Assembly: GCF_048593235.1 (NCBI RefSeq)
Contig: NC_133617.1
Span: 16,497,607-16,561,606 of the forward strand
DNA: 64,000 nt
Reading direction: 5' to 3'
DNA from: Sminthopsis crassicaudata
Lineage: Eukaryota
The notes beneath the pieces are model-generated. The model was not told the DNA's origin and ran no database searches. It saw only the letters and a program-made list of their open reading frames with translations. This document shows positions 15,901-21,900 of the stretch, in pieces (within the stretch, counting starts at the first letter, position 1; the number at the start of each line of letters is the position of its first letter). The translations under genes and the position numbers were made by a program.

Positions 15901-18900
15901 ATTTATTTGTTTGTTTGTTTTTGCTGAGTTGCCCAGGGTCACACAGCTAGGAAGTGTTAAGTGTCTGAGACCAGATTTGAACTCAGGTCCTCCTGACTTC
16001 AAGACTGGTGCTCTATCCACTGCATCAGCTAGATGCCCCAAGAATATATTTTAATACTCAATGAAAATATTGTTTTTTAATTATTTCATGTATCTAAGTT
16101 TTCTCTTCCCAACAGAAGTTTAAGATCCTTGAACAAAAGGATTCCAAGATACACTGATGCTCCAAAACTCACCCTAGTATTAGGCATTCAGTAGTTGAAC
16201 TCAACTGAAGTACCAAATTTTAAGTGATTCATCACTGTCTTAAGATTTCTCAATTCTAATAACAATTAAAGCAGGCCTCTGAACACATTGTGATATTGGT
16301 GCCATGAATTTTCAATTAAATAATGAGCATGATTCCAGTATAGATATAAGGGTATCCCTTATTGGGTGACTATTTTTGGTGGCAAAACTTTTACTTCTCA
16401 CAGTGTTGCTGTTGATGTTTTAGATGATTTAAAAAAAAAAAAAAACAATGTGTTAGAACAAAAATTGTAAATGAGTCAGGATTAAAATGTAAAAAAATAC
16501 TGAAGTCAGGAAAGACTGCCTATAGGTTACATTGATTCCCACAATCCTTCACAGGGCAAGTGAGATGGAGATCAAAAACAATAATAAAAAGAGAAGGGGG
16601 GTTCCTAGTTTATATCCATGAGTTTTCTTATTTGAATAGACAAATGGAGAATAATATAGGAAATTAGAAAATATATAACTGTCTCCATCACTTATATCTT
16701 AAAAACAAAATACTCCCAAACCGTCTTCCATAGGATTCTCAGATCATTGATGAATAATATATTTCCTAAACCATAAAATATATCCTAAAATTATATAACT
16801 TCAAATGTTTTCTTTTGTACATTTTCCAAAGAACTTTCACAACCATTCTTTTATATGGGTCTGACAACAACACTGTGAGATAGGTTTGGCAGGTATTATC
16901 CCCATGCTTTTTACAGATGAGAAAAATTGAAGTTCAGAGGTTATAAAACTAAGCCCAAGGCATCACAGTGTATCCATACTGAAATAATGTGATGTTCGTT
17001 TTAATAAAATAAGCCTCATTTTCCAGTCAATAGATTTGGAGTCTTAATGGTTTGAAAGGAAACCCATAATTTGATCTCAAAAAAAGAAAACTTTGAAGCA
17101 TGCACAAATATGCTATGTATTGAATTTTGCCCTCAATGAACTGTTAAGAATGATTTTTCATACAACTTTTGTAATGATAAAAATCCAAACAGAATGAATC
17201 CTTTCAAAAGTAGTATTGAAATATTGCAAAAAGTAAAAGAAAAAATCTATAATTCTTTAAAATCTCTTTCAAACTTCCTAACATAAAACATGCTTAGCAT
17301 CCTTAACAATTCACAGCATTGTTACTAATACAACTCTGCCACAGACAAACAAATGACAGTTCACTGCACTCAAAGGCACAATGCACTCTGCCCATTACAT
17401 AACAACAATACAGCTAACAAGTCACAGCAAAAAACCAAATACAACAACAACAAACAACCTCCTGTTGCCTTCACTGATATTCTCACCTCTACCCCTTCCA
17501 TGGCAGGCTGAACCAAAACAAAAATTACAGCATGAAAAAATGCAACAAAAAAGTAAAAGAAAAAGAAAAAAGAAAAGTAGATACTATTCTTCAGATTGCA
17601 AAGTCATAAACTGACTTAATAGGTTATTTTCTCACCTCAAACTGACAGAATGGAGACAACGAACATCTCCCGCACTCTGAAATGCTCTCCTGAGGATGGG
17701 GAGGAAAATCATCTTTTTTTTTTTTCTACTTATGTTATTTACACATAACTTCCCACACACTCGTGCACAATAAGAACTAATGAGTGAACAAGACAATGAA
17801 AAGACAATATTCAAATAGCACTTGAGACAGAGGAATAGCCAGACATAGAACAGAACAAACCTCTATCCCTTATAGATCAAACTACATAGATCTTTTATGA
17901 GAAAGTACCCATCCCCAACCAAAATGAAGAATAGGGATTTGAGAAGTTATAAGAAACTATATAAACAAATCTGTTGCATGCATTTTGGCAAAGAGAATTG
18001 TTTTATTTAGCATTAACATAAACAGGTTCAAGTTTTAAATAGTTTTCCCACCAGAAGGAGAAACACTTCAGTCATATGAGGTAAAGTAAATTCAGTCCTC
18101 ATTCACTGGGTATCTTTTAGGGTTTACACACTGAGGAGAACCCTCAACAGTGACTAATTGATATATTGAGAAAATGATCACATTTCCCCCAAAATATGAC
18201 TACATACAGTAAATGGTGCAATAAAATAATGGATTAGTATGTGTTATCATGTACTAAATTATTAAGAAATAAAAAGAAATTGCAATCAATTATTAAAAAT
18301 TGGAATAGATAACAACAAAGTTTAATAACCTCTCCTTCACATTAATAACCAAATAACCAAGAAGATTCAGATAGGTTTTCTATCTTTGTAATTTAAAAAA
18401 AAAAAATGAAACTACAATTAATTTTTTGATAAAGCAAAGATCGCCTGGGTTCTGTATAAGCATAAGCAAGCTATATATTAACCATTTCATAATCCCAACA
18501 ATTCCAACAGCTGCATAACACACATAACAAAAAGTCAGTGCTTAGATTCAAATGCAGCATAAACCCTAGATTGGATAAAGAGGGTAGCCTTCTTAAACAA
18601 AGGCTATATAGCTATTAGATTCCAATGAAAAAAAAACCATCATCTTTTCACTTCAGATTCTCTGAATTTATTAGCTGAGTTACTATATCTCCTCTGAAGC
18701 TGCCTATGCACTTTGGATATTACTTATTACTAAATTACTAATAAAAAAAAAAGTACTTCTTTTGGAGCACTGCTCACCTCTGAATTCAAGTACATTTCCT
18801 TGAAAAAAAGAAAGAAGAATTTACTAAAAGACTGAGGGATTTTATCCTTTGGGGAAGACTCATTCTGAAAGTTATATAAAACATCTCTCATGGATTTGCC

Positions 18901-21900
18901 TAAGTGCTTTGCAGAGTACAATGCCTTGCTATTAAGGCCAAAGGAAAAATTTACTTACAAATTAACTTGCAAGTCAGAGAAATACAGAAGGCATTTTGTT
19001 CCTCCATCCACTAGAGCATACATTTTCTTTAATGTACTTTACTGAGTCCAACATGGGACTTGCTATTTTATTTTGAGTATTTTTAATTAATAGCAAACAT
19101 TCAAAGTAACATTCCTTCTAAGGTTAAAATGCTGGTTTAATTTTGTTCAAAATCCTTTTAAAAAACAGGAAATTTTATTCACATAAATAAACAATGACAC
19201 AGAATGGTTGAAACAAAGCACAATAAAGCAAGAAAATTAATAGTTTGGAATGAAATGAAGCATCTAACACGTACAACATGACAGGAAGCTATTTTGATTA
19301 GGCTCCTGAATTTCTATACAGTAATCCCTATGTAATAGATTGCTGTAAAATCCAATTAGACTTTACAGAAACCTAAAAGAACCACAACCCATACAGGACA
19401 ATACACATTCACATTATAACCCATCCATAACAGTTAGTGATTACCTGCTAAAAACCAACTTGTTTCAAATCTTAATGTAAGTAAATAATGTTAGATTCAA
19501 AGTAGTAGAAAAACATCAAATTATGGGGGAAAAAAACAGTATTAGTGAATCAAACTCAAATACTAAGAACAAATCATAAGAATGAATGTAACCCAAAGTA
19601 TCACTCAACATTCCCCCCACTCCAAAAAATAATTCAGCATAATATCAAACTGAAGAGAGAGAAGAGGGACATATGCTGTGAAGCACGTCCATTTTAGAGA
19701 TTTTGTGAACTAATATCAAGGGGAAAATACTTCTCTCATTCTTTTATTAAATACTAAAATCTTTTAGTAAATTTTACTATATAATGGTAAATATAAACAT
19801 TTATATAAACATTATAAAAACAATATAAACATTCCAAAAGGAACATAATTTAAATGAGAAAAAAAAGCATTAGTATCAAAATTCTGGAGCTATAAGGCTC
19901 CTCAGAGCTTGCCTTGTCCAAGTACATCAATGCCAGTCAAATTATTTACATAATTACTAATATGACTAGTTAGTCATTGTCAATTATCTACATAAAATAT
20001 ATTGCAAAGAAGCTACTATCTAGTATTTTAGCAAAAACAAAGATTAAATGTTAACCAAAGTTACTGTATATAGCACTTCCACCCCCCCCCAAATGAACAA
20101 GTCACTTACATTTCCATCACTCCTCTGTCCACCCTTGTGAGTGATAACAACCACTTCCATCCACTTGCGTAGGTGTTGCTATTGTAAATACATTAAAAAA
20201 ATTAATTTTACAATTACTCTTTTATTGAGACCCACAACTGCACACACTGCCTCATGTAACAATTAAGTTAACTATCTTTAAATCCTTGAGACATGTATTT
20301 TCATCTAAAATATGTACATATCTAATTTCATGTAATTTAAATCAGGTAAAATATAAAAGACAAAATAAATTAAAAGGCAGAAGATATGATTCCCATACTA
20401 TGAATGTCATGTTTCAAAGATCCATATTGTCAAAGTCTAGTGAGCAACTTCATTTTCCTTAGACAATATCTAAAAAAATTACTCAATAACATCATATTTC
20501 AAATCATATTACTAATAGTTCAGATTTGGAAAAAGAGAAAGAAAAAATGTAAATTAGTTACTAACATACCACTCCCTCCACAAATAGTTCAACATCTTCT
20601 TATGCCTTAAAAAATAATGCTAAAGACTTCTGGCAAAACTATTCCTGCAATAAAAATAACAATAGACCAAAGAATGATCAAGATATCCAATCAAAAACTA
20701 TATTAAGTGCAAAAAACTATACAAAAAGTTAGCTAGAAGTGCATTATAGGGATTGAAACTAAATAGTAGAGACCTTGAAGGGAACACCTGGCAACTTTCA
20801 AATACAGATATACAAGATCCAGGAGTTCAGTTCTAACATCTCTAAGCACTGTGTCCTTAAAAGCTAAAGAGGGCTATGCAGATCTAGCACTTTCAACATA
20901 GGTCTAGCCACAGGAGAAGAAGGTCTGTACAGACAACCATGGTGATCCACACAGGACCAAGCAAAAGCAACTATTCCACCCAAAAGCACAGCAGAAACCA
21001 GACTCTGATCCTGGCATAAGATTTCTGTGTAGAAACTTAGAAAGAAAAGCTAAGTATCAACAAAATATATATCATTAAAGAATGATAAAGAGATTCAGCA
21101 ATATCAAAAAATTCAATCTAGAAATTACATAAATAAAAGCAGAGTCTCAAAAGACAAAAAGAATCTTCCTTCCCACGGGAATACCTAGAAGCAATAAAGG
21201 AAGAGATTGTAAAAATGAAATAAAAGTTATGGAGAAAAAGAGTTGAAAGAAAAACAGTTTATCCAAATAAAGGATTCCTTGAAAAACAGAACAAAGAGAA
21301 ATCAGACTACTAGGCAGCAAAATTTACTAAAACAAGATCAAAACATCAAAAACACTTGACTTGGTAAACAGATTGAAAAATAATTTAAGAAACATTAGAT
21401 TCTCTGAAAACCATGATTTAAAAGAATAAAGACCTGAATAACACCAAAATGAAAATATAAGAATTAAAAGAAATCTAGAAAGATAATCTGATGAGAAAAG
21501 AGCTTTATGGAAAAGAGCTAACAATCTAAAAGAGAAAAGAAATGTTTCTATTCAAAACCTCAATGTTTTCAAAAGTTATTGAGAGAAATAAGACAGAAGA
21601 CTAGATTGGTTCTGTTTTGAAGATGAGAAAGAAAAGGAAAGTTAAAAGTTGAGTATATGTATTATTGTATTTCTCACAAATGTGATGTGTACAAAGAGTA
21701 TTCAATAAACATGAAAGTAAGGGGAAGTAAGCATCAGATGCATTTCTTTTCTGAATTGGATGAATCTACTGTAATAGTTGAATATAGTCACACATATTCA
21801 AACACATACATGCAATTGATGTAGAAATTCATCAGATTCAACAAGGAAATACCAAGAGATACAGAGAAGATGACTTAAGAAGAGGAGGTTAATAGCAAGA

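Follow-up and report, generated by a model that had tools for sequence, protein, structure and literature searches.

Two conserved in-frame cassette exons in one TRRAP intron of Sminthopsis crassicaudata and a third, lineage-specific candidate

The TRRAP gene and its cassette-bearing intron

The stretch of DNA analyzed here, in the following called the window, comprises 64,000 nt of contig NC_133617.1 from Sminthopsis crassicaudata (assembly GCF_048593235.1), and a large part of the TRRAP gene lies inside it on the minus strand. Two acetyltransferase complexes, SAGA and TIP60/NuA4, share TRRAP as their scaffold, and the gene is associated with neurodevelopmental disease. Searching the window with TRRAP proteins (tblastn) gave 42 exon matches, which run from approximately 57 kb down to 4 kb; the exons were searched singly and not as a spliced model. 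Their highest similarity, approximately 95%, is to proteins of birds and agamids, against approximately 93% to placental proteins. Window positions 15319-15376 were masked in this exon map, as well as in the 19-kb comparison with locus L002 and in the window self-BLAST described below.

The cassettes in question lie in a phase 0 intron of 4,735 nt at window positions 20109-15375 on the minus strand, which begins with gtaagt and terminates with ttattag. It is flanked by exons coding for residues 1469-1491 (upstream) and 1510-1550 (downstream) of human TRRAP:

20110..20178, minus strand: upstream constitutive exon, 23 residues, 23/23 identical to human TRRAP 1469-1491 (PDB chains) and kept in loci L002-L009; it ends in phase 0 and is followed by gtaagt.
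15251..15374, minus strand: downstream constitutive exon (start EMKIC...), human 1510-1550 in chain 8h7g_C; the 15251 end is deduced from the reading frame.

The matches of these exons to human TRRAP agree with the gene assignment in an earlier note on this stretch, which had proposed an array of short cassette exons within one TRRAP intron. The four strings named there, EMYLNSE, an 18-residue peptide (ESI), PAMEGVE (PAM) and the trinucleotide CAG, are all present where it had placed them, in this single phase 0 intron and on the minus strand, the strand having been left unstated. Each of the three peptide-coding cassettes has AG before it and GAG/GTGAG at its end (a slash marks the splice junction). 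The claim that the inserts fall at one position of the HEAT solenoid also stood, as the Tra1_ring family PF20206 is recorded both on open reading frames (ORFs) over the 57-aa exon that lies one exon further upstream and on ORFs over the exons beyond the junction.

The loci used for comparison include L002, a 12-kb contig of a distant tetrapod, L003, a near-identical second sample, and L005, a further locus. The metagenome contig L001 carries TRRAP exons, stops short of the cassette intron and was left out of the analysis.

A 54-nt cassette orthologous to human TRRAP 1492-1509

17636..17689, minus strand: 54-nt alternative exon ESI, 18 residues, orthologue of human TRRAP 1492-1509; ...cctccccatcctcag/GAG...TTTGAG/gtgagaaa.

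In the 3859-aa chain 8h7g_C the downstream exon corresponds to residues 1510-1550, and in the 3830-aa “isoform 2” chain 8xvg_L to residues 1492-1532, so that the two human forms differ by exactly 18 residues at this point. Since human residues 1492-1509 are present in the 3859-aa PDB chains and missing from the “isoform 2” chains, the ESI segment is a known alternative exon. The window peptide, read with two intron codons on each side, is identical to 8h7g_C residues 1492-1509 at 17 of 18 positions, the one difference being a Pro to Ser change, and the exon is found between the 1469-1491 and 1510-1550 exons, in phase 0 and with AG/GT borders. The likeness to the human segment thus comprises the flanking exons, the phase, the peptide and the exon end, which is targeted by a published primer: the “isoform 2” reverse primer in PMC11864812 is the reverse complement of the 3' end of ESI. 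Orthology suggests that the exon would be used alternatively in S. crassicaudata as well.

With small changes ESI is present in annotated proteins from marmot, chinchilla, bat, macaque, marmoset, geckos, anole and snakes. Loci L002, L003 and L005 depart from the human protein, showing VVVL, PAVEGVE and Ser for Pro. No ESI was seen in fish, either in the proteins or at the loci examined. The coelacanth prediction P0261 has, after ...QRSEGN, a 20-residue insert, NFRYINLCGHCSVHELTCFD, which resembles the CGRCS...CQFE core of ESI, holds CGHCS...CFD and may be related to it. Given this insert, the ESI cassette may predate the tetrapods.

A 21-nt neuronal microexon

17487..17507, minus strand: 21-nt neuronal microexon PAMEGVE (PAM); ...ttttggttcag/CCT...GTAGAG/gtgagaat; matches a published human primer.

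Porter et al. 2025 (PMC11864812) reported 16 conserved splicing events specific to neurons in 14 chromatin regulators, one of them TRRAP, with validation by reverse transcription PCR and next-generation sequencing (RT-PCR/NGS) in mouse and by quantitative RT-PCR (RT-qPCR) in human, and gave UGC at the 3' splice site as the nSR100 binding motif. The human “TRRAP isoform 1” forward primer of that study begins with 21 nt that match window positions 17507-17487 letter for letter. Besides these identical 21 nt, PAM shares with the published TRRAP microexon its place directly ahead of the EMK... exon, the upstream UGC and deep conservation. Its 21 nt lie within the 3-27 nt of nSR100/SRRM4-type neuronal microexons, are a multiple of 3 and keep the frame, both the exon and its flanking intron are highly conserved across vertebrates, and UGC lies close upstream, at -25 and -37 from the acceptor, both copies being invariant in the alignment of the cassette block (alignment A2). 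Residues 3 and 6 are changed in the fish versions, and the neuron specificity has been reported for human and mouse.

The pattern PA[MVLT]EG[VL]E is found in annotated proteins ranging from cyprinids, salmonids and bichir to monitor lizard and primates, and PALEGVE followed by gtgagatgtg occurs in four fish genomic loci. In sterlet isoform X5 (P0262) the microexon reads PAVEGGVE, eight residues instead of seven, and would be a 24-nt variant.

The TRRAP event of Porter and colleagues reportedly comes from the programme of neuronal microexons of Irimia and colleagues (2014). A comparable case in the same set of 14 genes is exon E8a of LSD1/KDM1A, a 12-nt neuronal microexon which likewise adds very few residues in frame to a chromatin factor of broad expression; it belongs to another gene and, unlike the TRRAP inserts, has a known functional effect.

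ESI and PAM are combined in annotated proteins

The junction between the two constitutive exons was surveyed in 210 TRRAP proteins of more than 1,500 aa, where the inserts were excised by means of the downstream-exon anchor EM[KR]IC; smaller surveys of fetched proteins used the anchor NLFHL from the same exon. The 210 proteins divided as follows:

No insert at the junction: 98/210 proteins.
PAM alone: 54/210 proteins.
ESI alone: 9/210 proteins.
ESI then PAM: 3/210 proteins (macaque X5, marmoset X6 and a colubrid snake).
Other or unclear junction: 33/210 proteins.
Anchor not found: 13/210 proteins.

It is clear that the combinatorial use of ESI and PAM at one point of the solenoid is real and already present in public annotation. 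The combinatorial cassette array of the earlier note therefore stands for these two exons, which occur in annotated proteins not at all, alone or together, while the part that counted EMYLNSE as a used exon found no support.

Conservation is concentrated in the cassette intron

When 19 kb of the window was compared with L002, all conserved blocks were exonic save three, and all three are located in the cassette intron:

17338..17762, minus strand: conserved block with both cassettes, 78.9% identity over 431 nt to L002, equal to the level of constitutive exons.
19125..19269, minus strand: conserved intronic block, 70-81% to L002, L003 and L005 (19229-19179 against L002, full extent against L005).
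15462..15518, minus strand: conserved intronic block of 57 nt, 79% to L002/L003, approximately 90-140 nt upstream of the downstream exon.

The 431-nt block holds ESI, PAM, the 128-nt intron between them and approximately 150 nt past PAM, and in alignment A2 the final 45 nt or so ahead of ESI and of PAM are nearly invariant. The genomic loci of this other tetrapod (L002/L003) retain both exons with their AG and GAG/gtgaga sites. The suspicion that this intron is under constraint was supported by this profile, the block being 79% identical to a distant tetrapod and the other introns in the 19 kb being without conserved blocks. The argument originally offered for it, a scarcity of transposon remnants at 17100-20100, was assessed through a proxy, the within-window repeat cover, which is 0% there versus 7.2% elsewhere; many other stretches of 2-6 kb are equally empty.

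The block at 19125-19269 has its counterparts at L002:6806-6859, L003:3418-3471 and L005:4989-5149. In these three loci a donor-like GTGAGT or GTAAGT follows CAAG/G, while in the window AAGG is deleted and the sequence reads GTGAAT. An in-frame exon is excluded, and the block may act as a splice-site decoy or regulate splicing. The 57-nt block at 15462-15518 could act as a regulator of acceptor choice. Downstream of PAM, at 17338-17480 on the minus strand, there are conserved G/U-rich stretches (GTTGT repeats, TGTCTGTGGC). A review (PMC13343711) names TRRAP among the genes with TDP-43-dependent cryptic exons.

The candidate cassette EMYLNSE

18778..18798, minus strand: candidate 21-nt cassette EMYLNSE; ...ttctttctttttttcaag/GAAATG...CAGAG/gtgagcag.

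Upstream of ESI and PAM lies the 21-nt candidate EMYLNSE, which, if it were a real and lineage-specific third cassette, would allow three independently usable in-frame inserts and up to eight protein forms. Its signals are mixed. The donor matches the consensus at 7/9 positions, the pyrimidine tract is 90% pyrimidine and the frame is stop-free, but the acceptor is AAG, with a disfavoured A at -3, and there is no UGC upstream. The donor is moreover the rare 8-mer GAGGTGAG also present at ESI and PAM, and the other three copies in the window are real donors. Candidates of equal quality are rare: a filter for short stop-free AG/3n/GT segments with a donor of at least 7/9 consensus matches and at least 75% pyrimidines passed seven candidates on the minus strand of the window and two on the plus strand, and the seven consist of four in the cassette intron (ESI, two nested forms of ESI, and EMYLNSE) and three elsewhere.

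Against a real exon stands, to begin with, the background rate, as approximately 0.15-0.2 sites of this quality are expected in an intron of 4,735 nt. The site lies outside every conserved block and cannot be aligned in L002/L003, where global alignment places neither AG nor GT at it and where no comparable candidate is found upstream of ESI. An EMYLNSE-like insert is absent from the 210 TRRAP proteins, a sample that does not include close relatives of S. crassicaudata. Two scans of metagenomes, one with EMYLNSE and one with a lineage-specific part of ESI, gave no match, and a search for transcript fragments by words of the 57-aa exon further upstream returned genomic read-through ORFs only. 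We consider a genuine third cassette possible but doubtful; most likely EMYLNSE is a pseudo-exon, and at best it would be an exon of this lineage with low inclusion.

EMYLNSE (18798-18793) and the downstream constitutive exon (15374) both start with ag/GAAATG (Glu-Met), which we take as chance because their upstream flanks are unrelated.

The following proposed exon lies further upstream in the same intron:

19445..19447, minus strand: proposed 3-nt CAG exon; tttttag/CAG/gtaatc; outside all conserved blocks.

This microexon, put forward in the earlier note, was rejected as a chance occurrence, as it is one of 18 AG/NNN/GT sites in the intron.

The shared donor and the origin of the cassettes

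The 8-mer GAGGTGAG occurs four times in the window, always on the sense strand of the gene, namely at a constitutive donor at 27797 and at the three cassettes. Shuffling gives an expectation of 0.58 copies, and none of 100 shuffles reached four. One possible reading of the shared GAG/GUGAGA donor is that a single factor recognizes it as a dedicated regulatory code, over and above its function as a strong U1 site. The GAG/GTGAGA core is kept at ESI and PAM both in the window and in L002/L003, and at PAM in fish, and the 8-mer is present at only one of the approximately 42 constitutive donors in the window. The count was, however, made after the pattern had been noticed, and the motif, with 7/9 consensus positions, is a strong 5' splice site of the ordinary kind. 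The shared final Glu is largely a by-product, since phase 0 together with the consensus AG allows only AAG, CAG or GAG, and we know of no factor that reads the motif. A dedicated code is therefore in our opinion improbable.

The same donor had led the earlier note to suggest a serial duplication of one donor-containing module. All three cassettes end in GAG/GTGAG, and at the donor ESI and PAM agree in 12 of 13 nt, but the resemblance stops there: when the modules were aligned locally in pairs, with 60-80 nt of flank, the scores fell within the range of shuffles (z = -1.3 to 1.5) and nothing was shared beyond the 8-13-nt donor, and the window self-BLAST gave no match between modules. Nor does the upstream flank of EMYLNSE resemble that of the downstream exon. 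In addition the cassettes differ in age, PAM reaching back to ray-finned fish where ESI was not encountered. It appears very improbable that the cassettes arose in this manner, and the proposal found no support.

A probable splicing hotspot in the Tra1-ring region

Taken together, the intron is in all probability an alternative-splicing hotspot of vertebrate TRRAP, situated in the HEAT region of the Tra1 ring and containing two established in-frame cassettes. The orthology of ESI and PAM, the conservation seen at their splice sites and in the flanking intron, and the annotated combinations are direct observations. ESI adds 18 residues and PAM, 128 nt downstream, adds PAMEGVE, so that including neither, either or both gives four protein forms with 0, 7, 18 or 25 extra residues between ...SDGN and EMK.... 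In the mechanism that we propose, PAM would be included in neurons because a factor of the SRRM4/nSR100 type recognizes the two invariant UGC motifs at 25 and 37 nt upstream of its acceptor, and the conserved GAG/GUGAGA donors would provide the strong U1 pairing required by very short exons. The inserts would presumably extend a loop and not a helix.

Four points weigh against this picture. The use of ESI and PAM in S. crassicaudata is deduced from their orthology; the loop is a predicted position; in the literature searched we found no paper linking the TRRAP microexon to SRRM4 dependence; and the enrichment of GAGGTGAG together with the strong pyrimidine tract of EMYLNSE leaves room for a real exon at that site.

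A neuron-specific insert in the ring domain is of real interest because of the scaffold role of TRRAP and its link to disease. Most of what the intron shows is already known, as ESI, PAM and their combinations have been annotated and published, and one lineage-specific candidate remains. The window adds the orthologous arrangement in one more amniote and a clear view of the 431-nt conserved block, and furthermore one candidate exon (EMYLNSE) and the two other conserved intronic blocks. Should EMYLNSE be real, it would have been recruited beside two ancient cassettes with the same GAG/GUGAG type of donor, and the TRRAP loop would be a combinatorial insert site of three modules.

Other observations

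At L002:10864-11841 and L003:7523-8449 the introns past the downstream exon are so small (approximately 90-150 nt) and free of stops that a 308-aa ORF runs through three exons. The window contains 163 N at 50143-50305, which represent a gap or a mask. Copies of a MIR-like short interspersed element (SINE) are located at 15889-16039, 12182-12295, 25216-25292, 34615-34728, 44926-45076 and 47859-47973; their mutual identity of 81-91% hints at a non-placental amniote, being that of elements younger than the MIRs of placental mammals.

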